Translations under genes and position numbers: made by a program
Shown here: piece by piece, positions 1 to 64,000 of the stretch
Numbering within the stretch: the first letter of the stretch is position 1
Layout: the number at the start of each line of letters is the position of its first letter
DNA from: Hyaloraphidium curvatum SAG 235-1
Taxonomy: Eukaryota > Fungi > Monoblepharomycota
Assembly (NCBI GenBank): GCA_025558095.1
Contig: JAIVFI010000010.1
Span: forward strand, 682,001 to 746,000
Reading direction: 5' to 3'
DNA: 64,000 bases
Notes under the pieces: generated by a model
The model's input: only the letters and a program-made list of their open reading frames with translations
The model's database searches: none
What the model was told of the DNA's origin: nothing

Positions 1-1209
1 CTCATCGACGCGTCCCCGGACCCCCTCGCCGCCCTCCGCGCGCACCTGGCCCTCCGCCCCGCACCCACCCTCCCCTCGCTCACCGCCCCCTCGGCCCTCC
101 CCGCGCACTCGCCGGCCTCCAAGACCCTCTCCGTGCTGCACGCCGCATCGGCGGTCCCCGCCCTCCCCGACGCCCCGCTGCTCGCCACCGCGCTGCATGC
201 CTTCTTCCTGCGCCCCCTCCCGCGCCTCGCCTCGGCCGCCGTCGACGTGTTCTCCTCCGACTTCAACGTGCGCCCGGGGCCCGGCGTCTGGGCGCAGTTG
301 CTGCACCGCGCCTCCCGCACGGGCGAGCTGGACGCCGCCGGCCGCGCGCTGGACGGCCTGTCGGCGGCGTCGGACGCGCCCCCCGACGCGCGCGCCGCGA
401 CCATGGTGCTCGCGGCGTTGGTGATGGCCGGCAGGTTCCGCGAGGCCGCGGGGGTCTGGGGCGGGCTGGTGGATGCGCGCGGGGGGAGGGTGGCGGCGGA
501 GACGGTGGGCGCGTACCTGGGTGCCGTGCTGGCGACCGGCGGGGACGCGGGGGCGTGGCTGGCCGAGGTTGCGGGGAAGGGCGGGGAGGTGACGGCGGGG
601 CACTACAACAAGGCCGTGCACCGGCTGATCGGGATGGGCAGGGCGGAGGAGGCGCGGGCGGTGTTTGAGGGGATGCGGGTACCCGCGAACGGGACGACGG
701 CGGCGACGGTTGCCAAGCTGGCGGGGGTGATGAAGGACGCGTGGCTCCTGGACACCGCGCTGCGGTGCGTTCCGGCACCGATGCTGGGCGCGGATGCGTG
801 GGCGGCGGCGGGCAAGGCGCTTTCGGTGATGGGGCGGCCCGGGGAGGGCGGGGAGCTGCTGCTCGCGTGCCTGCAGGGGCGGGAGGCCGATCGGGCCCGG
901 CTCCCGGACGGGTTCCCGTTGGCGGGTGTGCAGCCCCCCCGGCCGCACGTGGGCGTCGCCGCGGCCGCGCTGCAGATCGCCGAGCGCGTGCCGGGGGAGC
1001 CGAGCGAGGAGCTGGTCCGCGCCTGCCGGGCGTTCTTCGAGGCCGCGGGGGAGCCGGGGGCCGGGGGGATGGGGATCGAGGGGCTGCTGAGGCTGGCGGG
1101 GATGGAGCCGTGGGTTGACAGGCCGAGGGAGCAGCGGGTGGAAGGGGGGAAGGGGGGGGAGAGGCCGGCCAGGGAGCAGCGCGGGCGGTTGCACGGGAGG
1201 GGGGTTTGA
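1..1209 (+). CDS. PPR (pentatricopeptide repeat)-like protein, 5' end outside the window
   Basis: Frame 1 is open from base 1 to TGA at 1207-1209. PPR-like helical repeats, e.g. PDARAATMVLAALVMAGRFREAAGVW and TAGHYNKAVHRLIGMGRAEEARAVFEGMR. Confidence 0.65.
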   Translation, partial: LIDASPDPLAALRAHLALRPAPTLPSLTAPSALPAHSPASKTLSVLHAASAVPALPDAPLLATALHAFFLRPLPRLASAAVDVFSSDFNVRPGPGVWAQLLHRASRTGELDAAGRALDGLSAASDAPPDARAATMVLAALVMAGRFREAAGVWGGLVDARGGRVAAETVGAYLGAVLATGGDAGAWLAEVAGKGGEVTAGHYNKAVHRLIGMGRAEEARAVFEGMRVPANGTTAATVAKLAGVMKDAWLLDTALRCVPAPMLGADAWAAAGKALSVMGRPGEGGELLLACLQGREADRARLPDGFPLAGVQPPRPHVGVAAAALQIAERVPGEPSEELVRACRAFFEAAGEPGAGGMGIEGLLRLAGMEPWVDRPREQRVEGGKGGERPAREQRGRLHGRGV

Positions 1210-2091
1210 GGCGCCGCCCTGAATCGATGCGGCATCCGGCGAACAAGATTTCGAAAGCCGTGCCGGCGGTGCCGCTCCCTCAATCCTGCCGCCGCGGTGA
1301 GCCGCGCCGGTGAGACAGTTCCCCGATCCGATTCCCCGATTCGCGCGGCCGCATGACGCAACGCGGAAAATCGGCCCCACCATTGACGTCGCCTGCGGCG
1401 CGTCGCTTCCATCCAACGCCCCTCCCTTCCCGTCGCCGTGCATCGAACGACCCTGCTTGTCATCGGCGGATTCGGATCCCGCCGCCCGGTCGGCGGCACG
1501 GCCGCGCCGGCCGAGCGCACGGAACCCGCGGGCGGTGGGATTTCCCCACCGGCCCACCCCGCGATCGCGCGGCGACGGAGCGCCGTCGGCAGCCGCCCGC
1601 TCCTGCGGATCAGGGCCGCCGGTGCGGACCCCGTGATGGCGATGCGTGGGGTGCGGCCTTGGATTTTGGGGTGGTCCGCGGGAGCCTAAACTGTGGCGGC
1701 GTGGCGTGCGGGTGCGGGGCCCGATCGGTGACCAGTGGTGGCGGGACCCGGGCCATCGGTGGGCGAGGAGGAAGGCGCTGCGTCAAGAGAAAGTCAGGGG
1801 CAGCGGCGAGGCGGCGGTGGTTCGGTGGCGTCGGGGAACTCGCGGCGGCACGCGGTCGGCAGCCGTCCGCGGGCCCCGCGTGCCCTGATGCCCCGAGTGT
1901 GGATGCAGCCACGCGCCCGGTGCCGGATGGATAAAATCCGGAGGGCCGAGGCTCGACCGCCGCATAGTTATCGGCGGGGCGCTTTTTCAGAGGCACGAAC
2001 CGCTGCGGGCGGGTGGCTGAAGGCGCACTCCACACCCACACCCAGCGGCCTCCAACCGAACCGGGCGGGCCGAGCTTCCCGGGCGACGGCG

Positions 2092-4115
2092 ATGTCGTGG
2101 GACCGGGCGGCCGCGGACGGCGGCGGCGGGGCGGCGGACTTTGCGGGGGCGTTGGCGGCCTCGCTGGCGCAGTCGCAGAGCGCGCGGGCGTTCCCGGCGG
2201 GCGGTGCGGCGGGCGGCGCCGCGGCGGGCGCCCCTCAGCAGGCGGCGGCGACGTGGCCGCAGCAGGCGGCGGCGTGGGCCGGCGGCGGGATGGGCGGCGG
2301 CGGCGGCGCGGGAGGCCTGCCGGCCGGGTGGGGCGGGCTGGCCCCGCAGCAGGCCGCGTTCGCCTTCTCGGCCGTGCAGCAGTCGGCGGCATACGGCGGC
2401 ACGCCCCATTTGTCCGGCACGCCGCAGCTCGCCTTCGTGGCAAACAGCTCGCCGCCGCTGCCGGTCGCCGGCTCCTTCGGCTTCCGGCCCGCGCAGATGG
2501 CCCCGTCGGCGCTCGGCACGCCGGTCGTGCACGCCTCGCACTCGTCGCACGGCTTGCTGGGCGTGCAGCGCCCGTCGGGCACGCCGCTGGACACGCTGGA
2601 CCCGCTCGACCCGTCGGACTACGCCGCGCTGAGGATGGCCGGCTCCCAGGGCTCGCTGGCCGCGCCCGTGCCGCAGCACGCCTTTGTGCGCCCATCGCAG
2701 CAGCTATCGGCGCAGCAGCTCCCCGCCGGCGCCCTCTCGCCCGGCTCGGCGCTCGCCTCGCAGCTGTACGGCATCGACCTCGGCGGCTCCCTTGACCCCG
2801 CCGCCCTCGCCCGTTTCCCCGTCGCCAATTCCACGTTCCCCTTCGGCAGCAACGCCGGCTTCGCGGACCAGGCCGCCGCCATCCTCGGCGCCCAGCCCGG
2901 GATGCGCATCTCGGCCGACGACGCCGCCATCGACGCCCTGCTCTCCTCCGTCCTCTTCGAACAGGCGCAGCAGCAGGCCGCCGCGGCGCAGAGCGGCTCC
3001 CCGTCCGCCTACTCGGGCGGCGTCGGGTCCCCCGCCGGCTCGGCGGGCACCCCCGCCCCGTCGGACCTCCTCGCCCCCCCGCAGCCCCCGGCCTCCTCCC
3101 GCCGCACGCACACCTTCCCCCGCGCAGCCGTCGGCGGCCGCGCCCCCGCGTGGCCCGCGGCCCTCGCCGACCCGGGCTCGTCGGCCTACTCCCTCGCCGC
3201 GGGCGCGCGCACCGCCGAGTTCTCCTTCCCCGGCCTCGCACCGCAGCTCCTCTCCAAAACCCGCTCCGAGACGCTGCTCCGCTCCCCCGCGCAGCCCACC
3301 CTGCCTCGCGCATCGGCATCCGCCGCCGCACCCCTGTTCCAGAGCCCGATCGTGATGCCGTCGCAGCTCTCCGCCGCCGCGCCATTCGCCAGCCCGCCCG
3401 GCAACCCGCAGATCGGCAGCCCGGACCCGCCGCCCGGCAGCGCGCCGGTGGGCTACTCCCCGCTCGTCTTCCAGGCCGCGCCCCCGGGGGACGACGCGGG
3501 GGCCGCGCTGTTCCGCACCTTCCCGTTCGAGGACGCCGGGGTGCTCTGGGACTCGACCCTCGAGCCGGGCGCGGTGATGCCGCCGCCTTCCGGCGGCGAC
3601 GAGGAGCACGGCGAGTTCGAGGAGGGCGACGAGCACGGCGAGCAGTTTGGGCACGAGGCCTCCCCGCACGGCAGCCTGAGCCGCAAGGAGCGGGAAAAGG
3701 GGGAGGGGGTGGTGCGGCGGCGGAGCAGCGTCAAGAAGGAGCGGACGCACGTGTGTCCGCAGTGCGGAAAGGGGTTCCTGACGGCCGGGCACGTGAGCAG
3801 GCACGCTTATTCGCACCTCAAGGAGGAGGACAGGCCGCACGGTGGGTCGCCTCTGCTGCCGGACGCGGGGACGGCGCGCTGACCGGACCGGACGGGAACC
3901 CAGCCTGCCCCTACCCGGGCTGCACCAAGAAGTTTGCCCGCAGCGACAACATGAAGACGCACCTGCAGACGCACTTCCGGCCCGGCGGGCGCAACGCCGA
4001 GCACCCCCCCGCGGCGGGGGCGGCGCCGGGCAACTCGACGTGGCCGGTCGCGGGGGCGCAGGGCGAGGGGTGGGACGCGGCGCTGGAGGGGATGCTGGGC
4101 GAGGGGGGCATGTGA
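2092..4115 (+). CDS. C2H2 zinc-finger transcription factor (two fingers, Nrg1-like); exons 2092-3841 and 3904-4115
   Basis: Splicing the GTGGGT...GCTGAC...CAG intron (3842-3903) gives CPQCGKGFLTAGHVSRHAYSH-LKEEDRPHA-CPYPGCTKKFARSDNMKTHLQTH. Low-complexity A/P/S/Q N-terminus. Start codon inferred. Confidence 0.85.
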
Positions 4116-5038
4116 TGCCGGATCGGGGAGTGGGATGCGGTGCGGTGGAGGCTGCGGATGCCGGCGCGGGTGGGACGACGCGGGTGGGGGTTTGGAGGTG
4201 CCTGCAGGGATGCGGTCGCGCGTGTATTGCTCTGTCTGCCTATTGGGAGGTTCCGAACGGGAGGGTGGTTCGCGGTGGTCCGTTGGGCGGATCCCGAAGC
4301 CTGCGGGCGGGGTCGGTGGGTGGGTCGAAGGCCGCACGCCGGAGGGATCGGATCGGACGGGCTCGGCACGGCCGGATCGGCCGGTCCCGTGCGGTCCGGG
4401 CGGCATCGTGCGGCCGGCCGGTGCGGAGGCCGCAGCGCAGCCAGTTGGGAAAGGGCGCGCTCGGAAAAACGGAGGCCGGCGGGCGCTGTCGGAATGCACG
4501 GATCGCGGGCCGGAGGGCGCCGGTTGGTTCCGGGGGTGGTTGGCCGTAGCTCCTTTGTGGGCTTCGGGGATGGGGCGCGGGGGTTGGAAAGGGACGGGCG
4601 CCGCGGTGGCGGGGACTAGGTGGCCGCGTCCGATTCTGTTCTGGCGATGCCGCCGAGGGCTGTGGCGAACGGCGGCTCGGAACGGGCGCGGCAGGCGCGG
4701 CGGGCCGGTGCGGAAGCGCTTTCGCCGGTTCGGGAGTCGGCCGGCGAGAAACGGGCGGCGCGGTGGGTCTGCGGTTTGGAGCGGCATCTTGCGGTCGGGT
4801 TTCGAAGGTGGGTAGGGGTTGCCGGAGGGACGGCCGGCGGGCTCCCCGGCGAGGGAAAGGGCCGATCGGGGCCGGAAGCAGCTGGATCGGGGGGCGTCAG
4901 AGCTGCGGGCGCGGTTGCGGTGCGCGGAATGCGAGCGATCGGTCCGGTGGGGACCGGCCACCGTCCTCGGGTGGGGTCAGGGATACCGATGACCTGGATC
5001 TCCAAATTACCCGCAACCACCACGACATCCTCCTCGAC

Positions 5039-6095
5039 ATGACGCCGCTGCAGAGCGCGTACGTGTCGCTTGCCGGCCCGGGCTCGCCGGCGGCGCTGCT
5101 CGGGCCGTTCCCGGTCGGCGGCGGCGGCGCGGGGACGCCAAACTCCCTGCCGCGCAACGCCGCAGGTGCGGCCACCGCCGGACCCCGCTCCGCCCGCGTC
5201 TCGCGCCCCGCCGGCGCCGCCGCGCACCGTGCGGAAGCCGCGGCCGTCGCGATGGCGGCGGCGCAGGGCGGGCCGCCGCCGCCGGGCTTCCCCGCATGGC
5301 AGCCCCCGCCCCGCGCGCCGATGCCGCAGCGCACCCCGTACGGCCCGTACACGAACGTGCCGGGGGCCGCCCGCCGCAGCCCGCACGGCCCCGCCGTCCC
5401 CGCCGGGCAGCCAGCCACGCTCCCGCTCGCCTTCTTCCTGCCGTCCCTCGCCGCGCCGCCGCAGGACCCGTCGGACTGCTACTGGACGTCCCGCGCTTAC
5501 CTGGACCTGGTGGCGCCGCTGCTGGCCCGCGCACACGCAGACGCCCCCCAGCTCCAGCCGAACACGCCCCACCCGCCCTCGGCCTGCCCCTCGGCGGGCA
5601 CCCTGCACCCCTCCCCCGCACGCCGCACCGCATCCTCCTCCGGCTCGGACACCTTTGTCCTCCCCGGCGCAGAGCCCGGCGACGAGGACGGCGAGTTCGA
5701 CCCGGACCCGATGTACCCGGGCCCCGGGGACCCGTCAGCCCAGCCGGCCCTGCCGAGCACCCCCGACCCGGCGTCGGACAGCGACGCGCACACCGAGCCC
5801 GCATCGGACGACGGCAAGGTGCACGCATGCGGGGAATGCGGGCGCGCGTTCAAATCCTTCGGCCACCTGAACCGGTGCGTCCCCCACCCGTCTCCGCGTC
5901 ACCCCCGCCGATCGCTCACCCGTTCCCCTTCCCACCGACAGCCACGCCAAATCCCACCTCCCCGAGGCCCTCCGCCCGCACGCGTGCGAGTACGGCTGCG
6001 GGCGGCGCTTCGCGCGCACGGACAACCTGCGGATGCACCACGCCACGCACGACCGCTCCGGACGGGGGAGGAGGAGGCGGCAGAGACGGGACTGA
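5039..6095 (+). CDS. C2H2 zinc-finger transcription factor (two fingers), tandem relative of the previous gene; exons 5039-5874 and 5942-6095
   Basis: Intron GTGCGT...CTCAC...CAG (5875-5941) joins CGECGRAFKSFGHLNR-HAKSH-LPEALRPHA-CEYGCGRRFARTDNLRMHHATH, followed by a basic NLS-like RGRRRRQRR tail. Confidence 0.85.
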
Positions 6096-31233: not shown

Positions 31234-34200
31234 TCACGCCCTGATCAAATTCTCGGGAAAGTCCACCACGGGCCAGGCAACGTTCCTCAAGATCTGCCCC
31301 GCGGCGCCGGCCTCCTTGTCCTTCCCCGCCGGGCGCGCCTTTCCCTCCGCCCCCGCCTCCCCGCTTGCCGCCGGGCCGGACGAAGGCTTGCCCGCCGCCG
31401 AGCCCTCGTAGAACTTGAGCTCGGCGGAGAGGATGTTTTTGAGGTGCGCGTTCTGGATCGGGGGCCACGTGGGGGGGCGCTTGGGCTCCGCGAGCTGCGC
31501 GGCGCGGAAGAAGGTGAGGAAGCCCTTGGGGTCGCGGTCGTGGACCAGGCGGTGGTAGGCGAGCAGGTACAGGGCATCGACACCATTCTGCACAGGAGTT
31601 GCTCGAGTCATTGGTGCTGCGATTATTGGCCCGCAATAGATCCCACCTTTGCGTCGGGTCCGGCTTCGCGGACGTAAGCCTCCAGGTCCTGCGTCGCCTG
31701 GTACCAGTACTGCTGATGCTCCTTGTTCCTCGCCTTCTGATCCTTCTTGAGCGGCGATCCCAGCGGCGGGTGCTCGCTGAGGTTCGACCCGCCCGGAGGC
31801 ACCCGCAGCTCGCCGCCCGGCTCGCCGGCGCCCACGAGCTGCAGGCCGCAAACACCGCGCAGGAACAGCGCCTCGTAGCGGGGCAGTAGCCGCCTCTCCC
31901 TCTCCACCAGCCTGTCCACCTCGGCCAGCGGCAAACCGTTGGCCTTGCCCTTGCCCGCCGGCACCAGCGCCCCGTCCGCCCCAGTCCCGGTCTCGCCCGC
32001 CACCGCCGCCCCCCTCGCAATCACGTTCCCCAGTTCTCCGTACGCCCGGCGGAACTTTTCCCATCCCCCCAGCTTCATCAGCAGCGAGCACGCAAACACC
32101 GCCTCCGCATCCGCTCTCGCCGGGTCCCGCAGCAGCTCCAGCGCCGGCGACGCCGCGGCCCCCTTCGCGGGCCCCTCGACCCGCCCGCGCGACTCCCACT
32201 TCCACAGCGTGTACTCGGCCGGCCACCCCGCGCACGTCTCCATGAGGTAGCACAGCACGGTCTCGGCCATGCGTCCGACCTCGGAGCCGTAGTACGGCTT
32301 GCGCTCCCCGCCGGCCAGCGGGGCAGCGGTGCCGCCCGCGGAGGGGTTGCCGCCCTTCCTGCTCCGCGCGCCGTCGCCCGAGGCCACCTCGGCGTGCAGC
32401 GGGGCCGAGGAGTAGACCGAGGCGTAGTAGCACACGACGGCGCAGACGAGGCACTCCGCGATGCCGGCGTTGCGGAAGGCCGAGGGGTCCGTGGTGAAGC
32501 CGCGGTAGTAGCACTGCAGGCTGCGCACGGGATCCTCGAACGAGAGGGCGATCCGGTGCGCCTCGAGGAACTCGTTGCGCGCCGCGGCAAAGGTGAGGAT
32601 GGTCTTGGTGCGCTGCTGCTGCGAGTTGAGGACCAGCGAGGAGAGCTGCGCCGGGAGCGCGCGGAGCAGCGGCGCGGGGAGCTGCGCCGACAGATCGAGC
32701 GGGGAGGAGAGGTTGGGCGGAGCGGTGGAGTAGTGCGTCGAAAAGGCGAGCGACGATAGGAGGTGCAGCGCCGACTGCAGATGCGGGTTTGCCGCCGCCG
32801 GCCCGCTCCCGGGCGTCGTGGCGGTCCAGCTCCCCGTCGCCGCCGACGACGCCGACCCGATCCCCCCCGGGGGCTGTGAAGGCGACTGGCCCCCGCCCGC
32901 TGCCGAGCCCGAATCCGAGTCCTTGAACCTCGACATGAGGCTGCGCTTGCCAAGCACCTGCTTGCCCTTTGCAGGCCTCTTGGCCCTCCTCGCCGCCCCG
33001 TCCGCGTCGTCCTCGCTCGACTCGGACGCCCGCCGCGACTGGCTGGGCGACCGGTACAGCTTCGTCTTCTTCTTGGTCCCCTCCTCGTCCGACGCCGCCG
33101 ACGGCGCCGCGGGCGTCAGTGGCGCCGCGACGGGCGCGGGCGCGACGCCGCTCCGCGGCGTCCCCGCGCTCCCGGGGAGCAGAGGCGGTTTGAGCGCGTT
33201 CGGGTTCCCCTTGGGCGTCTCCACCGCCTCCACCTTGCCCTCCCCCTCCTCGGGCGTCCCCGCCCGCGCCGCCTGCGGGAGCGGCAGCGGCGTCGGCGGC
33301 GCCGGCGCCAGCGTCCCCTTGCGTATCGGGCTCGGCGACACCACCCCGCCCTTCCTCGCCCTCCTCTCTCCCCCCTCCTCCCCCTTCTCCTGCCCCGCGG
33401 CCCCGATCCCGCCCCACCCCCACACCAACCCGCCCAACCACTCGGCCCCGCGCCCGCCCGCCCCGCCCCGCGCGCGCCCGCGGCCGACCTCGACGCTCTG
33501 CACCCCCGTGCCGAGCCATTCGGCGTGCATCGCCGCCGGGGCGGCCGAGGGGAACGGAACGAGGTAGCTGCCGATGTCGCCCGGGTCCAGCGGCAGGTGG
33601 CGGATCCACCGGCGGCCGGCGGGGTCCCATACCCCGGGCAGCGTGCCGGGCCCGGGGACGGAGAAGGCGAGCTGGTCCGCCTGCGGGGTCGCGGCGGAAG
33701 AGAAAGCCGAGAGGGAGAGGGAGGTGGGCGACAGCGGGGAGAAGGCGTAGGTGGATGGGAGGAGGAGGTCGTGCAGGGATTGAGGAGGGGTGGTGGGCAC
33801 GGGGGGAGGGGGTGCGGCGGCGGAGTACGGCCATGCGTAGGCGGGCTTGGCGGGGCCCGAGGGCGGGGAGACGGGGGATGTCGCTGCCGGCGCTTGCGCG
33901 GGTGCCGCTGCAGGCGCGCTGCTCGCGGGCGCCTGCGCGGCCTTGCTCGCCTCGGCCGCCGCGGCACCGGGCAACCCTGCCATCCCCATCCCCATCCCCA
34001 TCCCCGGATCCACCACGAACCCGTTCACCCACGCCGCCGACATCAGCCTGTCCGCCTGCCCCCTCTCCCCGTTCTTGGGCGCCGGCGGCCGCGCCAGCTC
34101 CGTGCTCTTGAGCAGGCACCCCAGCTTGGCCAAACCCCACGGATTCCCGGCCAGCGCCGACCTCGCGAACCACTCCCTTTCCTTGCCCGGTCCCGCAGCC

Positions 34201-35816
34201 GACTCCTCCGCCACCCTCCCCAGGATGTACGCCGCCCTCCCGTTCCCCATCTCCGCGCTCCTCGCCAGCCACGGCACCGCATCCTCCACCCCCTCGCCCC
34301 CCGGCCCGGCACCGTTGAGCAGCGCCAGCGCGTAGAACAGCGGCACCCTCCCCGTCGTCCACGCGCCCCCGGCCAGCATCGCCTCGAGCTCCGCCGGCCT
34401 CCCGGGGATCGTGCGCCGGTCAAGGGCACGGCACGCGAGGCGGACGAGGGAGGGGAAGAAGTGGCCCAGCGAGGAGAGCGAGTACAGCACGTCCGTGGGC
34501 ACCAGGTGGGCGCGAATCCCGCCGCAGGGAGACTGCGACAGCGCGGGGTCGGGGCGGGAGGGGTGCAGACGCATGGAAAAGGCGCGGGCCCATGAGAGCG
34601 CGTCGTACTCGACCTCGGCGCCGTAGACCTCCTGCGAGCGGGCGAGGAGGTAGCATGCCAGGGGGTTGTCGGGGAGGAGGAGGGAGAGGAGGCGCGAGGA
34701 GAGGGGGAGCGAGGGGGGGCAGCCGATGCCGTGGTGCGCGAGGTGGGACAACGTCAAGATTGCTGGAAAGGACAGAGGGTGAGGGACGAAAGGTGAGGAG
34801 AGGCCGCCCGGCTCACCTTCATCGCCGCGCCAGCCCCATTCGCCGTCCTCGGGCCGCACGATCCCGAAGCGGCGCACGCCCTCGGCCATCCAGCGCACGG
34901 CGAGGGCGTAGTCGACCTCGCGGCCGAAGCTGCCGTTGAGGTACCACAGCGCGACGCAGAAGAACATCTCCGACAGGAACTCTGCCGACGCGGCGTCGGG
35001 CGGCTCGTCGCCGTACGAGTCGTCCGAGCACGACGACGCGCCGTCCTCGGGGGCAGCGAGGTGCGGCGGCGCGACAAAGTACGTGTCGGGGAGGAACGGC
35101 GGCGGGTCGTAGAATGCCTCGATCAGCGCGTCTTCGACCTCGTCCGAGGCCAGCTTTGCGCGTGCCTGCGAGCCGGGGTCGACGAACAGCGTGCGCGTGG
35201 CGGCGGCCAGCGCCTCGAGCACCTCGGCGAGCGCGGGGCGCGAGCGCAGTGCGGAGGGGCCGTCGTCGCCGGGCGGGTCGGCGCCGGGGAAGCGGTCGAA
35301 CACGCGCGAGAAGAGGTGGCGCACGAGCGGGTTGGCGAGCAGCGTCGAGTTGAGGTCGAGCGAGACGGAGTAGGACTGCTGGGGGGCGGTGGAGGGAGTC
35401 GGGATGGCGGGCGGCGGTGCCCCGTTGGGCGCGCCCTGGGCGGCGTCCTTCGCGTCCTCCGACCCCGCATCCGCGTCCTCCATTTCTTTAGGCGAGTCCT
35501 TAGCGTCCCCATCGGCGGATTTAGGCTGATTGGCGTCCGCGGCGGCGGCGGCGGCGTGATTCGCCTCTGCGTCCGCGTCGGCCTTTGCCGCGACCGCCGG
35601 CTCCGGCAGCCCCCCGCCGCCCGTCACCGCGTCATTGATCGAAGTGATCGGCGTCGGCACGACGACCAGCGCGCCCATGAACGGCCACGAGCCCTGCAGC
35701 ACCGCGCCCAGCGTGAGCGACGGCGGCGGCGGCGCGGCTGCCGGGGCCGCCGCGGAGCCGCCCGCCGCCCCGCCCGCGCCCGCGGCCCCGCCGCCCTTGG
35801 CCTTCTTGCCGCCCAT
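31234..35816 (-). CDS. Large protein with Sel1-like repeats and low-complexity linkers; introns at about 34763-34816 and 31589-31645
   Basis: Sel1-like AVPWLARSAEMGNGRAAYILG and EWFARSALAGNPWGLAKLG. Last exon (NGVDALYLLAY...NLIRA) follows a GTGGGA...CAG intron. Confidence 0.7.
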
Positions 35817-35948
35817 CGGCGGGCGCTGTGGCCGCTGCCGGCCGAATCCGCGGTTGAAAACGCGCGTCGCGTCTGATCACAACAACGCGCGAATTGACCG
35901 CGAAGCAGGCACAAACCGGTCCCCCATCTTCGGATCTAGAGCGATTAA

Positions 35949-37112
35949 ATGGCGTCTGCAAGTTCGAGTGACGCCTTGAGAGATTCGGAAGCCGCGAGGG
36001 CCATGGTCGCCGCGTTCGTCGAACTTGCGGGCGAGGCAGACCCCGCGACCCTGGACCTCCTCTCGACGGCCCTCGGGCTGACACAGGCAGAGAAAGAACC
36101 ACCTACACCCTCTGGTAGCAACAAATCATCCGATGACCAAAGGATCCGCGTGAGGGACGCGCTGGAAACCCTCCAACGCGCCCTGGACTCCCCCGACCCC
36201 GCCCCTTCCGACACCCTCGCATCTCTCCTCCGTGCCACCTTCCACAACCCCTCCTGGCTCTTCTCCTCCGGCCTTGCCTTCCTACACGCCGGCGACAACG
36301 CCGCCCCCGCCGACGCGCACCACAACCTCGTCGCCCTCTGGACCAAGAACTGCATCCTCGCCCTCGGCATGCTGCCCGACCCCGCTCCGTACCGCCTGCT
36401 CACCCACATGCTCCCCCCCGGCCGCGCGAGGAGGTTCGTCTCACCCCCCTTGGTCGACCCGCTCTTCGGCCCCGGCACCCGCGCCGCCGGCCGTCCCACC
36501 GCCGAGCGCATGGCGTTCGTCACCGCGCGGCTCGAGCAGGCCCTAGGGACGATGCCCCCCGGCCCGCGGCAGATCGCCGTCGTGGGCGGCGGGTTCGAGG
36601 TGATCCCCCTCCGCGCGGCGGAGATGTCCCCCGGGATCAGGGGTTTCGAGCTGGACCTGCCCCACGTCGTCAGGGCGAAGGCGCTCGCGCTCCGCCGGCT
36701 CGCCGAGGAACTCTCCCTCGACCCCGGTTCCATGCCGGTGCTGATCGGCGCTGACCTGCTCGAGCACACGCCCGCGGAAGCCCTCCTCCTTCCCCCCTTC
36801 GTCGCGCCCGTCTTCCCGGGCTCCCGGCAGCACGTATGGGACCCCCGCGTGCCGACCCTGTTCCTCGTCGAGGCCGTGCTCATGTACCTCCCGCCCCCCC
36901 GCGGCGCCGAGATCCTGCGCTCGCTCGCCTCCGCCGTCGCAGCGGCGCCCGGGTCGGCGCTGATCATGTGGGACCACATCGCGACCGATGCGAAGGAGGG
37001 CGAGGGGATGGTGGAGGCGGCGAGGAGGGCGATCGAGGGGTTGGGGCTGAGGGCGGTGCACGTGGAGGCGGGGATGGAGGGGTTCGCGGCGGCACTGGCG
37101 GTGGCGCCCTGA
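35949..37112 (+). CDS. SAM-dependent methyltransferase, leucine carboxyl methyltransferase (LCM)-like
   Basis: QIAVVGGGFE, FELDLPHVVRAK, GADLL, PTLFLVEAVLMYL. Confidence 0.75.
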   Translation: MASASSSDALRDSEAARAMVAAFVELAGEADPATLDLLSTALGLTQAEKEPPTPSGSNKSSDDQRIRVRDALETLQRALDSPDPAPSDTLASLLRATFHNPSWLFSSGLAFLHAGDNAAPADAHHNLVALWTKNCILALGMLPDPAPYRLLTHMLPPGRARRFVSPPLVDPLFGPGTRAAGRPTAERMAFVTARLEQALGTMPPGPRQIAVVGGGFEVIPLRAAEMSPGIRGFELDLPHVVRAKALALRRLAEELSLDPGSMPVLIGADLLEHTPAEALLLPPFVAPVFPGSRQHVWDPRVPTLFLVEAVLMYLPPPRGAEILRSLASAVAAAPGSALIMWDHIATDAKEGEGMVEAARRAIEGLGLRAVHVEAGMEGFAAALAVAP

Positions 37113-39038: not shown

Positions 39039-39614
39039 ATGCTCCCGCGGCTTCCCCGGACGGCGGGGGCGGCGACGGACGGCGGCGCGGAGGACGAGGA
39101 CGTGGAGGCCGGGGACGCGGAGGCCGGGGCCGCGGAGGCCCGCAAGCGGCCTGCGGGGCCCGCCCTCTTCGCGCTCGTGGGGATCCCCGAGCGGACGCCG
39201 CTCTTCCTCCCCGTCCCGCTGGACCGGCTCGGCCCCACGCAGCGGTTCTACACCGTCATTTGGGATGTTGCAGCCGCTTTCGGACTGTCGCCGCTGGAGG
39301 CCGCGTGCCTGCGGCTGTACGACGCCGGCCCGCGCGAGCCGGACCCGGCCGAGGCCGCGGCGCTGCTGCGCGACCCCGAGGCGCGGCGCATCGACGGATG
39401 GGAGGTCGATCTCGGGCGCTACGCGGGGCGGTTCCTGGTGGGCAGGATCGCGGAGCCCGCCGGGGGGATGCGGTACATGGCCCGGCAGGAGGCGGTGTTC
39501 CAAGCCGAGGCCGACTGGACGCGGAACGGACCGATGGGCGCCGCGGCGTTGCACATGTTCAGGGCCCCAGCAAGGGTGATGTCGATGCTTGGCGTGCACG
39601 ACAAGCGGGACTGA
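39039..39614 (+). CDS. Hypothetical protein, possible ubiquitin-like (Crinkler-header-like) domain
   Basis: Strong GC3 bias; LRLYDAGPREPDPAEAAALL...RFLVGRI pattern. Confidence 0.5.
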   Translation: MLPRLPRTAGAATDGGAEDEDVEAGDAEAGAAEARKRPAGPALFALVGIPERTPLFLPVPLDRLGPTQRFYTVIWDVAAAFGLSPLEAACLRLYDAGPREPDPAEAAALLRDPEARRIDGWEVDLGRYAGRFLVGRIAEPAGGMRYMARQEAVFQAEADWTRNGPMGAAALHMFRAPARVMSMLGVHDKRD

Positions 39615-40316
39615 CGCCGGTGGGCCTTTCTCGTCACCGCCGCCCTGTCGGACCTGCTTGACCGGCTGCATGCCGAGGCGGAGCTGCCAGCCGATCGCCC
39701 CAACGCAAGATCTCCCGACCCGGACCCGTACATGCACCTCCACGCGGCCCTGGTCGGTGCATGGACAACCCGGTTCGAGGGGCTGTACGGCATCACCCGC
39801 GCCAACCTCCTCCTCGTGCTGCCGGCCATTGTTGCGGCGTTCGTCCTGAACGCCGCAGCGGGCTCCTGCGTCGCGGCATGGCAGCTGGCCTGGCTCGCGT
39901 TCCTGCTCGCCTTTGGCGCGTCGGATCTCGCCACCTGCGCCACGGCCAACGCGGAGATCGCGGCCGTGCTCGCGCTGAACGGGGGCGCGCGGGGCGAGCT
40001 GCGGACCATGGCGGCGAGGGCGGATGCCGCGCGTCCGGCGCTGCAATCTCGGCTGGCTGCGCACGACCGCGTGCTCGAGTGGTACACCGGAGAGGCGGAG
40101 GCCGCGAGGGCCAGGATCCTCGGGTTTCTGATCACGGGCGGCGTCATACGCACTCTCATCGTGACGCTGTTTACGATCGGGGTCGGCCTGTGGACCGTAC
40201 TGAGAGGCAGCGGCATCTTCCTGACTATGGAGACGTGGTACTGCGATGAGCAGCTGACCGGAACGGGAACATGTTTGTCCACATCTGCCCGTGCTGGAAC
40301 CTGTACGCTACCATGA
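39615..40316 (+). pseudogene. 5'-truncated member of the 7TM family at 60981 (second loop to TM7 only)
   Basis: AALSDLLDRL, PYMHLHAAL..W..RF, ANAEI, ARILGFLITGGVIRTLIVTLFTIGVGLWTVLRGSGIFLTME align with 60981-62504. Confidence 0.7.
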
Positions 40317-40594: not shown

Positions 40595-41824
40595 TCAAGA
40601 TATGCGTGCCCCAACCAGAATGAAGGTCGACTTGTCCTCCCAGCTCCCCTCGCATGCCCCAATGTGCCGCAGCTCGTCTCGCAGAGCTGCGGAAAGCTTG
40701 ATGTTAGGGCGCCCGATCGCGTGCTCCCAGAAAGCCACCTCCGAAACGACCCTCCAGCTCGAGCTGTGAGCTGCGGCGGCACGGTCGGGCAGGTCCAGCT
40801 GGCCGACCGTAATGCCCAGATGGGGATGTGAGTCCTCCAGGGACTGCGTAAGGTTGTGCAGCCTGTCGAGGTCGTGGGTATCTAGAACAAGGCGTCCAAC
40901 GTGGACCTCGCGGAGGTTCGGGGGGAAGGGGAGCCCGATGAGCACTGATGACCAAAGCTCCGCGGCTGAAAGGCAAGCTCCGCGGGAAGAAGTGGAAGGC
41001 AGCTGCTCTCCGATCACTCGCAAGTCGGTAGTCGTGAGCGTTCCGTTCCTTTTTGCGATCCGTTGGGGCTTGAAGGTCGGAGGCACAGTGTAGATCCGAG
41101 CCAGAGACAGATCGTCGAACTGCACGTTCCACGCTGTCACTTTGTGTAGAACCTGCTCATTGCGATTTATCCACGAAGCCGAAAAGAGTTCACGTCCGAC
41201 CTCTTCCAGTCCGAGCTCGAAATAGTCCAGCAAAGGGGCTCCGGAAACGATCTGAGCGATCGGGAAAGATGCCCCTCGTTTCCCTACTCCCATAATTTTG
41301 AGCCGTCGAAGGGAGGGGAAGCTGAACGGCGGTTCCAGTCCCGCTCAGTTCGGGTTGGCCAAGGCGCCAGGATCGTTGCAACCGTGCCTGACGTCCAGAT
41401 CCGTGACGGACGGGGGCATGAAGCGAAGGAGCTCGAGCAGGGGCTCGAACGCACCACTCGACTCGAGAGTGAAGGATTCCAGCGCCGGAGTGGCCCGCAA
41501 CAGGCGCTTCGCGGGCGTGTGCGGGCAGAGCTGCAGCGACACGGTGCGCACGTATCGGAGCCAACCGCGGCGGTGCCAGGTGTCGACGCGATCTCCGAGA
41601 GCGGACAAGAGGTGCACATTGTTGCGGAAGTGGCGGGGCCCGTGCTGGAAACGCCAAAAGACCAACGGGGCCAGGGGCGCGAGGGCGTCCCGCGAGGCGC
41701 AGGCGAACCTGACCCGGGAGCGGTGCGGGAGGAACACCGCAATGCGGTAGATGAGTTCAGGTAGGAGCGCGGGAGCATGTCCGAACGAGGCGAGTTTGTG
41801 CGGAGTTTGGGCGTTGGGTGACAT
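40595..41824 (-). pseudogene. F-box/LRR-like gene with in-frame TGA at 41345-41347
   Basis: F-box LLPELIYRIAVFLPHRSRVRFACASR. The frame resumes after the stop (FPSLRRLKI...FPPNLREVHV). Confidence 0.6.
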
Positions 41825-58656: not shown

Positions 58657-60609
58657 TCAAGCCTTGGCCTGGTTCACGCGGAAGTCCATGCTGTCCCTGA
58701 CGCACAGCTGGATGGAAGCGGATCAGAATGGTTCCGGTCCAACACGGCAAGCTACCCACCGTCAGCGCGAACCCGTACCGCCCCTCCCGCTTGGCCGGGT
58801 CGACATCAAACTTGCCCCACTTCTCAGGCCGGTCCTCGTTCACGAGCTCCAGCGAGAAGCGCCGCACGATCTGGGCCAAAAAAGTCATGGCTTCCTGCGT
58901 CGCCATGTTCATCCCGAGGCAGATCCGCGGGCCGGCCTTGAACACCGGCCACTTGTACTGGTTCTCCTTGCGCAGGTTGCCCGCCGCGTCGAACCACCGC
59001 TCCGGCTTGAACTCCTCCGCGTCGGGGCCCCAGATGCTCTTGAGCCGGCCCATGATCCAGGGCGAGTACTGCACGCGGTCACCGGCGTAGATCTTGGTGC
59101 CCGAGCCCGACAGGACCGTGTCCCTTGTCGCGGTCATGATGTTGTTGGGCACGTTCTGGATTGGGCGGGTTAGGACGCTAGGGCAAGGAGCCGTCGACGG
59201 AGAGGCTCACGGCGTGGAGTCGGAGGGCCTCGTTGAACACGGCGTTGGTGTACTTGAGCTCCTTCAGGCTCTCGTAGGTGGGCTCCTTGTCGCCCAGCAC
59301 GGTGACCAGTTCCTCACGCAGCTTGCGCTCGACCTCGGGGTGGTTGGCGAGGCAGTAGAACACCCATGTCAGGGTCTGCGCGGTCGTGTCGCGGCCGGCA
59401 ATGACGATGTTGGCGACAAAGTCACGGAGCTCGTCGTCCGGGGGAAGGCCGCCCTCGAAGTTCTTGGTGGCCATGAAGTAGTCCTGCGTACGGAGCGGGA
59501 TGGTGAGCGACTGCCCCACACGACAGATAAACCAAACGGCCGGAACGTACCAGCATGTCCTTCTGCTTGTGCTCGCCCTTGGCGATCGCGGCCTTCTTCT
59601 GCGCGATGATCCCGTCGGCAACCTTCCGCATGACCTCCTGCGACTTGCGGAGCTTGGCGCTCTCGCCCGACAGGCGCTCGGTGACGGGCCACAGGGGGTT
59701 CGAGACGCGCCTCGACACGAGCATGTTCTGCAAAGGGGCTTAGCACTGCTCGTGCTGCGGCGCCGGGCTGAACTCACGACAAAGTCGAAGCTCTCCATGT
59801 ACTCGACGTTGGGGAGCGAGTACCTGCCGTCCTTGATCACGGGCTCCTGGGCGATGCAGCCAAAGTCCGTCCCCATAGCGAGCCGTCCGAACGAGTCCAG
59901 GGTGCAGCGGAGCAGAAGGTCCTGCAGGTCCACCAGCGCACCGGCTTCCGAGGCCCGGTTGAGGTGGTCACACAGCTTCTCGACCTCCTCGATGAAGTCG
60001 CCCGAGAAGACGTCGCGGAAGTTCTTGACGTTGAAGACGTGCGAGGCAGTCTTTCGCTGCGCGTGCCAACGCTCGCCGTCCTGGGAACCGAATGGATAAG
60101 GACAAAGGGTCGGGAAGGCGGATCAGGGAAACTCACGGAGTTGAAGATGCCGTTGCCGAGGAAGTCGCCGAGGTTGTGGAAAAACAGCTCCCCCTTGATG
60201 AAGAGGTACGGGTCCCTCAGCACATCCTCGATGTCCTTGGGGTCCGACACGTTGATGATGTCGAGCGGGCCGAGCGAGGGGTGCGGCACCGTCTGCCTAA
60301 ACACCTTGCCCTCGCCTGCGGCGCGGGTCTTGCGCAGCATCTCCTCGAGACGGTAGGGCTGCATCTTTCCGACCGAAAGCATGTCGCCGAGCAGGGGGAC
60401 GGCAGTGGGGGACGGGGGGAGGTCCGGGCGGGCGCGGGTGCCGATGGCTTGGTTGAGAAGCGCGTCAGTGTCTTGCGTCGCTGTAGTTCGGAGGAAGCGG
60501 GCCTACCCCTGTCACGGTACTTGACGAGCAGGTAGACGAAGTAGCCGCCCATGACGAGCAGGGCGAGGACGGGGAGCGGGAGAGCGAGGACGCTTCCGAG
60601 GAGGCCCAT
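58657..60609 (-). CDS. Cytochrome P450, tandem copy 2
   Basis: Same motifs (AGRDTTA, EALRLH, FKAGPRICLG) and highly similar exons to copy 1. Confidence 0.93.
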
Positions 60610-60980
60610 GGTTGAAGCGAAGGGGAGGGCGGGCTGCAGTAGAACGGGGTTGCCAAAGAGGCTCGTCGAGGCGATGTCGAAGTGCGCGGAGCAGTGCCGG
60701 AGCCATGACGGAGCTTTATAGCAAGAATCGGGGGTCGGGGCTTGGAGTCGGGCATTCCGTGGGGGACGTTCGGTTTTCCCGCGGGCCAATCCCTACGGCT
60801 CACTCACTCGCCAACGCCACGGATAGGGGGCGGCCAGCAACTAGCAAGCACGTGAATTCAAGAGAAACGAATAGAAGACGCTTTCGCGCTTTCTAGTGTC
60901 CTCACAGACGGGCACCTCAACACGTGACACAATAGAATGTTCGATCTTCCCACTGCCTCTATCACGCCCGCCCACGCGCC

Positions 60981-62504
60981 ATGTCCTCGCCGGCCGCATC
61001 CCCGCCGTTCGCGGAGCTCTTTTCCTCGGCCGAGCTGCTCGCGATTTTCCCCGCCGCGCCGCCCGTGGAGTCGCCGCTGAGCGCCCGCACGCCGTCCGGG
61101 GACGACCCCGCGGCCCCGTTGAGGGCAGCCAACCCGCTGACTCGCGCCGCGCTCGAGAAGGAGCTGGAAATCTCGTCGGTCCTGCACACCGCAGCTCGGT
61201 TGCAGCTCACTTTTGCGCCCTTTGCTCGGGCCATTTTCGCGCGCAACCTGCTCCTGGTCTTCACTCCCGAAGCGCTTGCGGCCGCACCGGTCTGGGTGTT
61301 CGGCCGCGGTCTCTTCGGCACGCAGCAGCTGATCGTCGGATCGGTTTGCATTGTTCTTTTCGTCTGGCTCGTGCCCATGTTCCTCGCTCTGCCTTCCGCT
61401 GCGGGGCGCAACTTGGGCACCAAGAGCGACGTATTGGACCACCACAGCCTATCGGGGATCGCGCGTTGGCTTCAGCTAATCCGCGATACGTGCGGTGAGG
61501 CGTCAATCGACGTCAGTCCCGTGACTAAGGAGGCCGCATCTCCAACTCTAACCAGTTCGGAGCTGATCCGGCACCGCGCGGATGACCCCCAGTGCTCCTG
61601 CCCCGCTGCCTCCTGCGCCGGCGCCCTCCTGCACAGAGCAGGCATGACCCGACTCATCGAAGTCGCCGGGCGCGCCGCGCTGTGGTGCTTCACTTGCCTG
61701 GCGTCGGTCTGGACCGCAACCGTCACCCTCGGCCCCCAGCTATGGACCTCCGGATGGGCCGCGGTCGGAGTCTGGGCCATCGGCGGCGGACTGGTTGTCC
61801 ACACGCTTGCTAACGCGGGCCGGCACTTCACAAACGTCCCGCTTCTGGACCACACCCTGCGCGTCCACCGGCGTGCGATGGACATTGCTCTTTCCGACCT
61901 CGTCGACCGCCTGCGCCGGGATCTGGTTCCCGACGGCCTGCCGGAGCCCCCTAAGCGCGAGATCGCGGGGCAGGAGCCATTCCTGTGGCTCCACACCCGC
62001 CTAACGGCCCTCTGGCGGCATCGCTTCTCACTGGTGCAGTCGGGTTGGCCCATGATCCTCTTTGTCGCCCTGCCCTGGACTCTCTACGGCATCGCCAGCG
62101 TCGCCGTCGGCAACTGCCTCCCCGCCTTCGTGCTCATTGGCCTGAGCCTCATCGCCGTCAATGTCGTCGCGGACCTCGTCAACTTCGCCTCGGGAAACGC
62201 GCAGATCGGCTCCGTCCTGGAGCTGTACCGCGCCGCCTCCTTCGAGATCCGCCGGCTCGTCGCCCGCGCGCGGGAACCAGGCTCCCTTGCCTCCGACCGC
62301 GCCGTTTTGCGCGCCGAGGCCGCGGACAGGCTGCTCGAGTCGTGCCTGGCCGCGGAAAGGTTCGAGGCCAAACTGTTCGGCGCCGCGGTCGATACCGCCG
62401 GGGTGAGGAGGTTCGCGGCGGGGCTGGTGACCGTCGCGCTGGGGTTCTACTCCGTGCTCAGGGGGAGCGGGGTGGTGCTGACCATGGACAACTACTGCCG
62501 GTGA
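60981..62504 (+). CDS. Seven-TM membrane protein, candidate 7TMIC (Gr/Or/GRL-like) channel, intronless
   Basis: About seven hydrophobic segments, long second internal loop, C-terminal AKLFGAAVD-TAGVRRFAAGLVTVALGFYSVL. Two paralogs in the window. The CDS is well supported; the family call is inference. Confidence 0.75.
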   Translation: MSSPAASPPFAELFSSAELLAIFPAAPPVESPLSARTPSGDDPAAPLRAANPLTRAALEKELEISSVLHTAARLQLTFAPFARAIFARNLLLVFTPEALAAAPVWVFGRGLFGTQQLIVGSVCIVLFVWLVPMFLALPSAAGRNLGTKSDVLDHHSLSGIARWLQLIRDTCGEASIDVSPVTKEAASPTLTSSELIRHRADDPQCSCPAASCAGALLHRAGMTRLIEVAGRAALWCFTCLASVWTATVTLGPQLWTSGWAAVGVWAIGGGLVVHTLANAGRHFTNVPLLDHTLRVHRRAMDIALSDLVDRLRRDLVPDGLPEPPKREIAGQEPFLWLHTRLTALWRHRFSLVQSGWPMILFVALPWTLYGIASVAVGNCLPAFVLIGLSLIAVNVVADLVNFASGNAQIGSVLELYRAASFEIRRLVARAREPGSLASDRAVLRAEAADRLLESCLAAERFEAKLFGAAVDTAGVRRFAAGLVTVALGFYSVLRGSGVVLTMDNYCR

Positions 62505-63116
62505 ATGTAAACGGGAGCGTCCCATTTTTCGGCACCCTGGTCTCCTCGAGGAGGGTGATGGACAGCAGCAGCAGAATGCATCCTGCGAGTTGCGCCCTCC
62601 ACCGCTTCGTGTTGGCCCCTGGACTCATCCTGTACCCAGCCGCTGGCTCCATACACCTCACCGGGAGGGCGCGGCCGCCATGGTCCCGTCCTGAAGCAAT
62701 CCCGATCCCGAAATTGATCCACCTGCAACTTCCCGCATCCGGCACCTACCGCCGCTACGCGCTGCTGCGGGTAGTGGGGCCGTAGGCGAGGGACGAGCCG
62801 TAGGACCATCCCTCTCTACCCGCACTACCCGCAGCTGCTGCCGCACTCGCTCGCCCGTGGCTATACGACACACTTCCCAGCACGGCTGCTGCTGCCCGTC
62901 GGTTACGAGACTCAGCTGTCCCCAAACTCTCCCGCACCAGCAAAGATCGCCTAGCTACAGCTCCGCCCCCCCAGAGTCGAAAGCATTAGACTTTCCGTTC
63001 CGTCGCATGGAGCGAAAACATCGTTTGAGCCGAAAGTGTGGTTAATTGACGGCGGAAGAGGCGAGCACGGACTGGCTGCACACGCACGCTTCCATCGAGG
63101 ACTTCGACGAAGCTAG

Positions 63117-64000
63117 GAACAGGCCGAACATGACACGGTCGGGCTTGCCCCGGCGGAGTGGCTCGTGCTTTTCCCCGCCCCGCCGGCTGAGCCCCGGAGT
63201 GCCACGTGGATCCTTGCGCCCGACGAGCGGCTGGCGGATCCCGCCGCGGCGGCGCGGGCCGCGTCGCCGCTGACGCGCGCGGCGCTGCTCGCCGGGCTGT
63301 GCGGGCGGCCGCTCCTGCGCGGCATTGTGTTGCTGCAGTTCGCGGCCGCGCCGCTGGGCGCCCACTCGCGGGCCCGCGCCGCCGCGTTCGCCGCGGGCTC
63401 GGCCGCGCTCGTCGGCCCCGTGTGGGCGCTGAACGACGGGCGCTTCGCGCGGCGGCAGCTCGTCGGGGGCTCCGCCGCCGTCGCCGCGTTCCTCGCCATC
63501 CTGGTCGGCACCGTGGCCGCCACCGGCAGCTGGCGGGGCCGCTTCGCAACGGCCGCGCCCGGGCAGCCGCCGGCAGACGTGAGCTCGCACGCGCTGGCGT
63601 CGCTGGTGCGGTGGAGGCAGCTGGTGGATATGGCCCCCGATCGCGCCGCGAAGCCCGAGTCGCAGGGGGAGGCGGGCGTCGGATCCGGGGTGCCGCACAG
63701 GAGCGTGCTGCTCGACCACGAGCCCAACGACCCCTTCTGCCCGTGCCCGGCTGACGGGTGTGCGGGCCGTCTGGTTGCTTCCGTCGGTTACGTCAAGCTC
63801 CTGGACGGGACCCTGAGGATGTTGGCGGCCGCGATCGGGACCTTTTACGTGCAGCAGTGGACGGCTTTCGTCACCTTCGGACCGGCCTTCTGGACCACGT
63901 GGTGGTGCGTCGTCCTGGGGCTGCTAGTGAAGTGGGTCCCCGGCTCCCGATTGCTCGCCCGCTTCCCGCTCAGCATACCGTTTCCCCGCAGTCGCCGGAA
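63117..64000 (+). CDS. Tandem paralog of 60981-62504, runs off the window; start not resolved
   Basis: Open frame missing from the ORF track: AEWLVLFPAPP, AASPLTRAAL, PVWAL, SHALASLVRWRQLV, HEPNDPFCPCPADGCAG, WTAFVTFGPAFWTTWW. Confidence 0.75.

Follow-up and report, generated by a model that had tools for sequence, protein, structure and literature searches.

A several-hundred-member gene family with a predicted 7TMIC fold in the fungus Hyaloraphidium curvatum, a candidate repertoire of ligand-gated channels

In insects' odorant receptors (ORs), as well as in their gustatory receptors (GRs), the seventh transmembrane segment (TM7) is the best-conserved part of the protein, and the ligand pockets lie within the more variable transmembrane (TM) bundle. 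Beyond animals and plants, proteins of the seven-transmembrane ion channel (7TMIC) superfamily have so far been reported as products of single- or few-copy genes, none of known function. A study of unicellular eukaryotes in 2020 reported 17 GR-like (GRL) proteins from seven species, two of which, both of the genus Spizellomyces, had a single GRL each (PMC7746228), and in a 2023 survey the Fungi were represented by Chytridiomycota and Blastocladiomycota only, with Hyaloraphidium and any expansion unmentioned (bioRxiv 10.1101/2023.08.30.555482). In the literature searched, no paper ties Hyaloraphidium to gustatory receptors or to the 7TMIC superfamily, and no 7TMIC repertoire of several hundred genes is described outside animals. 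Here we describe a gene encoding a 507-aa membrane protein in a 64,000-nt stretch of the genome of Hyaloraphidium curvatum SAG 235-1 (contig JAIVFI010000010.1, positions 682,001 to 746,000; the whole of this stretch is called the window below). We read the gene as an expressed member of a several-hundred-gene family with a predicted 7TMIC fold, which would form a repertoire of tetrameric ligand-gated channels sensing the chemical environment, and we give this reading a probability of roughly 0.6. A first-pass annotation of the window had placed the protein, together with a tandem paralog and a truncated third copy, in a 7TMIC-like family of a basal fungus, and H. curvatum (Monoblepharidomycota) is such a fungus.

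The open reading frame (ORF) for the 507-aa protein runs without interruption (Table 1) and is covered by RNA contigs at 61150-62247 and 62311-62990 that contain no joint; the gene therefore has no intron, in keeping with its initial description as intronless. These contigs come from the one public run that holds this stretch (an RNA library), which informs on coverage and not on strand or expression level. The same library splices the introns of the neighbouring cytochrome P450 (CYP) genes, and its depth is 0 at 60801-61000. The gene is thus an intact, transcribed and real member of its family. One RNA contig departs from the ORF at 62273 and continues into 146 unrelated letters with no splice joint; faulty assembly, or a chimera with the transcript of a paralog, may account for this.

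The family extends well beyond its three copies in the window. A search of the H. curvatum assembly (31.9 Mb, 55 contigs) with the 507-aa protein returned at least 92 matches of 27-37% identity, about 80 of them full-length and nearly all stop-free, with 85 of 731 first-look candidates scored. Two more member queries gave 87-90 matches each, with about 30 new loci each, so that the genome-wide count of paralogs proposed in the first-pass annotation stands at no fewer than ~145 distinct loci from three queries, with saturation not reached. When 1.84 billion representative proteins were searched exhaustively with the family profile, 479 matched at E≤1e-3, among them 425 with E≤1e-10 and 308 with E≤1e-30. 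Among the best 150 of the 479, which were inspected, all 22 whose names were looked up are singletons named 'hypothetical protein DFJ74DRAFT_... [Hyaloraphidium curvatum]'. A region-restricted homology search returned two matches, both of them H. curvatum paralogs, and a metagenome scan with one protein, at low sensitivity, found no relatives. As judged from these searches, the family is one of several hundred mostly intact genes and is likely confined to H. curvatum. The window's own protein, a contributor to the profile, is missing from the best 150 of the 479 library representatives, where the best match to it is 34% identical; one possible reason is that the 507-aa gene lacks a GenBank annotation. 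Some GenBank gene models greatly exceed 500 aa or have more than one stretch that matches the profile (P0001, 772 aa; P0043, 739 aa; P0050, 788 aa; P0105, 710 aa); a fusion of adjacent genes, or of domains, may explain them.

An alignment of the window protein with 62 full-length paralogs (63 sequences, 480-543 aa) has a median pairwise identity of 30% and a median nearest-neighbour identity of 46%; the best 150 gene models have a median length of 501 aa. In the six closest paralog pairs dN/dS is 0.24-0.36, values by which the family is under purifying selection. The closest pair of all (77% amino acid identity, dN/dS 0.24) consists of head-to-tail neighbours on contig 6 (C6:171262-174528; L054 and L062). 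Further tandem or clustered members were seen at C39:391487-395099, C28:38945-49339 and C32:37430-44293.

The fold was approached through two AlphaFold2 (AF2) models, both built without templates. Model 1 represents the window protein and used the 63-sequence alignment (mean predicted local distance difference test score, pLDDT, 90.2; predicted template modelling score, pTM, 0.90); model 2 represents the paralog least like it (L066, 26% identity) and used a separate alignment (pLDDT 89.5). Hydropathy averaged over the 63 members shows seven hydrophobic cores, and both models contain seven membrane helices. Lysine and arginine within 15 residues of the TM ends average 11.7 on the cytoplasmic side against 1.2 on the outer side, with the inside count exceeding the outside count in 63/63 members. 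By this positive-inside rule the topology is predicted to have the N terminus inside and the C terminus outside, the inverse of a G protein-coupled receptor (GPCR), and agrees with the seven N-inside segments anticipated for the protein. A GPCR-like N-outside topology was rejected on the same counts, and no GPCR appears in the lists of fold matches. The three intracellular loops (IL1/IL2/IL3) have median lengths of 57/75/67 aa, against 6/17/4 aa for the extracellular loops (EL1/EL2/EL3). TM4 to TM6 are projected into the cytoplasm (helices 260-280 with 286-315, 333-351 with 356-377, and a continuous helix 382-430, with equivalents in model 2), as read from the secondary structure and alignment ranges of the predicted models. 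The seventh helix is split in both models into TM7a and TM7b, separated by a beta-hairpin; in model 2 these are helices 441-457/460-463, the hairpin (EE--EE) and helix 474-497. Both the anchor-forming loops and the split TM7 of the first-pass annotation are thus present as helices in the two models. Across the 63 members TM7b is the best-conserved segment, with a mean top-residue frequency of 0.60, and TM1-TM6 are the most variable at 0.29-0.40.

Comparison of the models with known structures points to ORs and GRs. When 48,161 representative chains of the PDB were ranked by structural similarity, ranks 1-7 for model 1 and ranks 1-8 for model 2 were all OR/GR, with near-complete coverage of the target. 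In Foldseek the top two matches of model 1 were AgamOR28 (probability 0.99; E 0.014 for the first), with no match at E≤1e-3, while ranks 1-17 for model 2 were all OR/GR (best E 2.5e-3). No full-length match to GPCR, rhodopsin or transporter families was found in any fold list for either model, and OR/GR structures are the sole full-length structural matches of both predicted models, an outcome that bears out the modelling check proposed at first pass. A shape search of the ESM Atlas gave as its best match an unnamed echinoderm cluster (TM-score 0.56/0.66 over 365 residues), followed by weaker cnidarian and arthropod clusters; language-model features in the same Atlas linked the protein to named clusters of DUF3537 (0.88) and of 7tm_7, Trehalose_recp and SRR (0.83-0.85), which are lead-level scores only. 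The features by which 7TMICs have been recognised (PMC7746228; PMC9998090) were found in the family: length (507 aa against about 350-500), seven TM segments, an intracellular N terminus, longer intracellular loops, OR/GR as nearest structures, the TM4-6 projection and the TM7a/TM7b split. That the likeness to OR/GR is convergent or an artefact of modelling, the family being an unrelated orphan seven-helix membrane protein, is improbable, since all OR/GR representatives top the 48,161 chains for both template-free models with near-complete target coverage and with no other membrane family among them, and since the inverted topology, itself rare, coincides with helices extended into the cytoplasm and with the division into TM7a, hairpin and TM7b. 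A shared 7TMIC fold is in our view highly probable from the models. The first-pass annotation had itself named three findings that would speak against its assignment; what was found is an OR/GR-like fold in place of no such likeness, an N-inside rather than an N-outside topology, and seven TM segments rather than another number.

Conservation within the family is concentrated in a few positions. Seven residues (H198, C205, C212, C379, N406, R476 and C506) are invariant in 63/63 members, and D202 (61/63), C207 (62/63), G467, T484 and G497 are kept in at least 90%, as are R294, R298, L337 and W345 of intracellular loop 2. In the first cytoplasmic loop the motif L195-x2-H198-x3-D202-P-L-C205-P-C207-x4-C212-A-G (in short form H-x6-C-x-C-x4-C) is modelled with pLDDT >90, and H198, C205, C207 and C212 probably form a His-Cys3 site for a metal (zinc). 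C379, in the four-residue turn between TM5 and TM6, and C506, at the C terminus, are both extracellular by the predicted topology, and a disulfide between them probably ties the C-terminal tail to the TM5-TM6 turn. TM7b carries the invariant R476 and a polar stripe (T477-T481-T484-G488-S491) whose spacing of 4-3-4-3 places these residues on one common helix face; this would be the pore-lining or axis-facing side of the helix. In the predicted architecture D398 (49/63), N406 and R476 group where TM6 and TM7b end on the cytoplasmic side. The motifs listed at first pass (LHxxL..W, A..N..I and A(K/R)(L/I)(F/L)G) proved to be consensus features of the 63-member alignment, where the TM4-TM5 loop carries YxxLHxxLxxxW, TM6 is followed by AAxNxQI and the last helix is preceded by RARxLGF.

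These features suggest a mechanism in which four subunits would assemble through their cytoplasmic helices (the anchor domain), the conserved TM7b would line a central pore through its Thr/Gly/Ser stripe, and the variable TM1-TM6 bundle would bind extracellular small molecules and open the pore. The repertoire as a whole would then serve the cell as ligand-gated channels with which it senses its chemical surroundings, and the His-Cys3 cluster and the Cys379-Cys506 pair would be additions peculiar to the H. curvatum family. The odds of ligand-gated channel function, taken as a separate claim, are close to even. A more elaborate proposal, put forward tentatively and as somewhat less probable, is that ligand-gated 7TMIC channels were built up independently in H. 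curvatum to a number of several hundred, and that this non-motile planktonic cell would use them for chemosensing, be it environmental or biotic. They would carry two new modules: a metal site of His-Cys3 type in the cytoplasm and, outside the cell, a disulfide that clamps the pore helix. If true, this repertoire would rival those of insect ORs and GRs in size and would be ~100 times the largest on record for unicellular eukaryotes or fungi. A large, mostly intact and selected family in a culturable fungus, of which at least the 507-aa member is expressed, would mean that big 7TMIC repertoires are not an animal invention, and its many intronless genes of ~500 aa would suit heterologous expression to ask whether ligand-gated conduction was the fold's ancestral function. 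Testable handles on assembly or gating are offered by the His/Cys cluster and the Cys pair, both invariant here and lacking in insect receptors. A further question is what a planktonic saprotroph without flagella would sense through such proteins.

Several observations weigh against reading the family as 7TMIC-fold chemosensory channels. The Foldseek E-values reach only 2.5e-3 to 0.1 and the TM-scores 0.2-0.44, all below 0.5, and the top named Atlas cluster by language-model features is TMEM39 (0.92), which is not a 7TMIC. Searching Pfam-A by hmmscan with the 63 members at E≤1 returned scattered noise and no 7tm_6, 7tm_7, Trehalose_recp or DUF3537, and the family profile found only noise among all PDB sequences. 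Of the TM7 motif (T/S)Yhhhhh(Q/K/E)(F/L/M), only T484 is kept (T in 62/63, S in one). The outer end of TM7b bears arginine or lysine at R494 in 63/63 members, a charge that the mouth of a cation pore would not be expected to carry. Since H. curvatum has no flagellated stage (PMC8371127), the usual rationale of chemotaxis is not applicable. With respect to sequence, the window protein matched nothing in Pfam at E≤10, and a genome search with PF08395 and PF12056 (7tm_7 and DUF3537) gave no match, the control searches being equally silent. The other positions of the TM7 motif are occupied by V/L (position 2), S/T/G (position 8) and I/L/V (position 9); the motif is considered diagnostic, not definitive, for GR/GRL proteins (PMC7746228). 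The 7TMIC assignment made at first pass is thus supported for the predicted fold, topology and architecture, but finds no support at the level of sequence families, be it in the 7tm_6, 7tm_7 and DUF3537 profiles or in the TM7 motif. Because that support is lacking, the family would stand as a new branch of the 7TMICs that is highly divergent and has expanded massively, rather than as a member of Gr, Or or DUF3537.

In one alternative the 7TMIC fold is real and the role is not that of chemosensory ligand-gated channels: the proteins might have another function under which a family likewise expands and diverges fast, such as self/non-self recognition or recognition of parasites or viruses at the cell surface, or be transporters, scramblases or constitutive channels, like the PHTF and DUF3537 branches of unknown function. 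For most 7TMICs outside insects no function is known (PMC9998090; bioRxiv 10.1101/2023.08.30.555482), the long first loop with its conserved His/Cys cluster recalls the long IL1 that marks the PHTF-like class, and both the non-motile host (PMC8371127) and R494 at the outer pore mouth would suit such a role. The combination of a variable TM1-6 with a conserved TM7b and anchor is, however, the pattern expected of a ligand-diverse channel family, and the size and birth-and-death dynamics of the repertoire are chemoreceptor-like. We regard this alternative as unlikely, and prefer the reading of the family as a repertoire of putative ligand-gated channels.

The two further copies named at first pass are both homologous to the 507-aa gene, and both have decayed. 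The tandem paralog from 63117 onward is a true relative (35% identity over 262 aa, E 3e-21), but is a pseudogene rather than a living gene. A TAG at 63114-63116 precedes it, the only ATG close by, at 63130, lies in another frame, and no in-frame ATG is present; its homology runs in frame 3 to ~63944 and in frame 1 from ~63988, and since it ends at family residue ~378 the copy lacks TM6-TM7. In the public RNA run the depth over its body (63401-64000) is 0. RNA contigs at 62794-63229 (depth 110-130) contain a 97-nt joint, 62990->63088, with GT..AG on the minus strand, and represent a spliced transcript antisense to the 3' flank of the 507-aa gene that reaches the start of the pseudogene; the contigs are followed by Illumina adapter at 63229, and no ORF was assigned to this transcript. 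The third copy (ORF 39615-40316) is truncated as initially described, matching the C-terminal 40% of the 507-aa protein (32% over 208 aa, E 7e-20). Its homology at 39633-40238 corresponds to family residues ~300-518, a stop at 39612-39614 lies directly upstream, family homology is absent upstream in all frames, and the native stop after the terminal Cys has been lost. Retroposition was considered as the origin of this relic and rejected, as no poly(A) tract was found. An adjoining ORF on the minus strand (41345-41824) has an N-terminus that looks F-box-like (LPELIYRIAVFL...). The three-copy family proposed at first pass therefore consists of three real copies, but two of them are dead and the family numbers hundreds of genes. 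The suggestion that it evolves by birth and death fits the two decayed copies, the 77%-identical tandem pair elsewhere and the low median identity: new members arise through duplication, tandem as well as dispersed, and others are lost by truncation and by frameshift, both kinds of loss being present in the window.

The copies could also be passengers of mobile elements or have been spread by them, retroposed and hence intronless, with most of them not functional host genes. The family is indeed intronless where neighbouring genes have introns of 50-97 nt, its copies are dispersed in their hundreds, and the relic in the window is 5'-truncated. Most copies are nonetheless full-length and stop-free with dN/dS of 0.24-0.36, the relic has no poly(A) tract, and the youngest pair is a head-to-tail tandem and not a dispersed insertion; the median identity of 30% implies old, independently maintained genes. 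This explanation is accordingly very improbable, and the family is better read as a set of host genes.

Elsewhere in the window, tandem CYP genes lie just upstream of the 507-aa gene (59007-60737) and have five minus-strand introns of 50-67 nt with GT..AG borders, all confirmed by RNA contigs. Single-base differences at 59418 (A>G) and 59448 (G>A), near the end of an RNA contig, probably stem from a paralogous CYP copy. The G+C content of the window ranges from 60 to 77%, being 72-77% at 1-6000 and 32001-36000 against 60-69% in most of the remainder.

Table 1. Coordinates of the family gene, its predicted protein segments, the decayed copies and the CYP introns in the window (aa, residues of the 507-aa protein).
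Feature	Position	Strand	Basis
Intact intronless gene for the 507-aa protein (predicted 7TMIC fold)	60981..62504	+	ORF; stop 62502-62504; retains all invariant family residues
Predicted N-terminal region on the cytoplasmic side (aa 1-84); conserved motifs E18-W-L-A-L-F-P24 and D42-P-A..R48...P52-L53	60981..61232	+	Column counts; pLDDT mostly 89-97; K/R-rich just before TM1
Predicted TM1 (aa 85-107) and TM2 (aa 114-140), joined by a short extracellular loop 1	61233..61400	+	Hydrophobic cores 92-102 and 122-134; helices 85-100/102-107 and 114-140
His/Cys motif of predicted intracellular loop 1 (L195, H198, D202, C205, P206, C207, C212, A213, G214)	61563..61622	+	Column counts; pLDDT 92-95; K/R-rich side
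Predicted TM3 (aa 214-242), extracellular loop 2 (17 aa), TM4 (aa 260-280)	61620..61820	+	Hydropathy, model, loop analysis
Predicted intracellular loop 2 (aa 281-355); helices 286-315 and 333-351 extend TM4 and TM5 into the cytoplasm (anchor-domain equivalent)	61821..62045	+	DSSP of model; 9.8 K/R per sequence
Predicted TM5 (aa 356-377), four-residue extracellular turn with invariant C379 (G-S-C-I-P), TM6 and cytoplasmic extension (aa 382-430) with D398 and invariant N406	62046..62270	+	Columns, model
Predicted seventh helix in two parts: cytoplasmic TM7a (aa 439-461) and TM7b (aa 472-495), linked by a short beta-hairpin (aa 462-471, A-K/R-x-L-G-F, G467)	62295..62465	+	DSSP H439-461, EE--EE, H472-495
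Predicted extracellular C-terminal tail (aa 496-507), strand 499-501, invariant C506	62466..62501	+	Strands 379-381 and 499-501 in both models
Tandem paralog, pseudogene	63117..64000, homology continuing past the window end to ~64257	+	No in-frame ATG, frameshift, early end of homology, no RNA
5'-truncated relic, family residues ~300 to end (TM5, TM6, TM7a/b)	39633..40316	+	In-frame stop just upstream; read-through tail past C-terminal Cys
CYP introns	59155/59211, 59482/59550, 59727/59778, 60079/60136, 60447/60507	-	RNA contig joints

Set beside the described members of the superfamily, the H. curvatum family resembles each in predicted architecture and departs from each in sequence or in number. 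It has ~5-12% identity to the insect ORs and Orco (MhOR5, 7LIC; AgamOR28, 8V3C/8V3D; AaegOR10, 8V00/8V02; Orco, 6C70; 7tm_6), with no Pfam match. It adds to their plan a conserved cytoplasmic N-terminus of ~60 aa, a first loop of 57-73 aa with invariant H-C-C-C, and an invariant extracellular Cys pair; its genes are fungal and intronless, the TM7 motif is not kept, and no conserved co-receptor was identified. To the insect GRs (BmGr9, 8VC1/8VC2; Gr43a, 8JM9; Gr64a, 8JME; 7tm_7) it shows no sequence similarity, and it lacks their TYhhhhhQF motif. Animal GR/GRL genes have typical 3' introns where the H. curvatum gene has none, but this criterion is uninformative in intron-poor unicellular eukaryotes (PMC7746228). 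With the PHTF-like (Class-B) 7TMICs the family would share the core 7TMIC fold and an enlarged first intracellular loop (bioRxiv 10.1101/2023.08.30.555482); PHTF proteins, of which the structure libraries searched here contained none, differ in having a far longer IL1 and in being encoded by low-copy conserved genes. GRL1 of Spizellomyces punctatus and S. palustris likewise belongs to early-diverging fungi, shows the same topology criteria and has a largely degenerate TM7 motif, one of its four positions being kept (PMC7746228). The GRLs of unicellular eukaryotes were found by BLAST or HMM likeness to GRs or DUF3537 and number 1-6 genes per species, with 4-12 in plants (PMC7746228), whereas the H. 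curvatum family, which has no such likeness, numbers in the hundreds.

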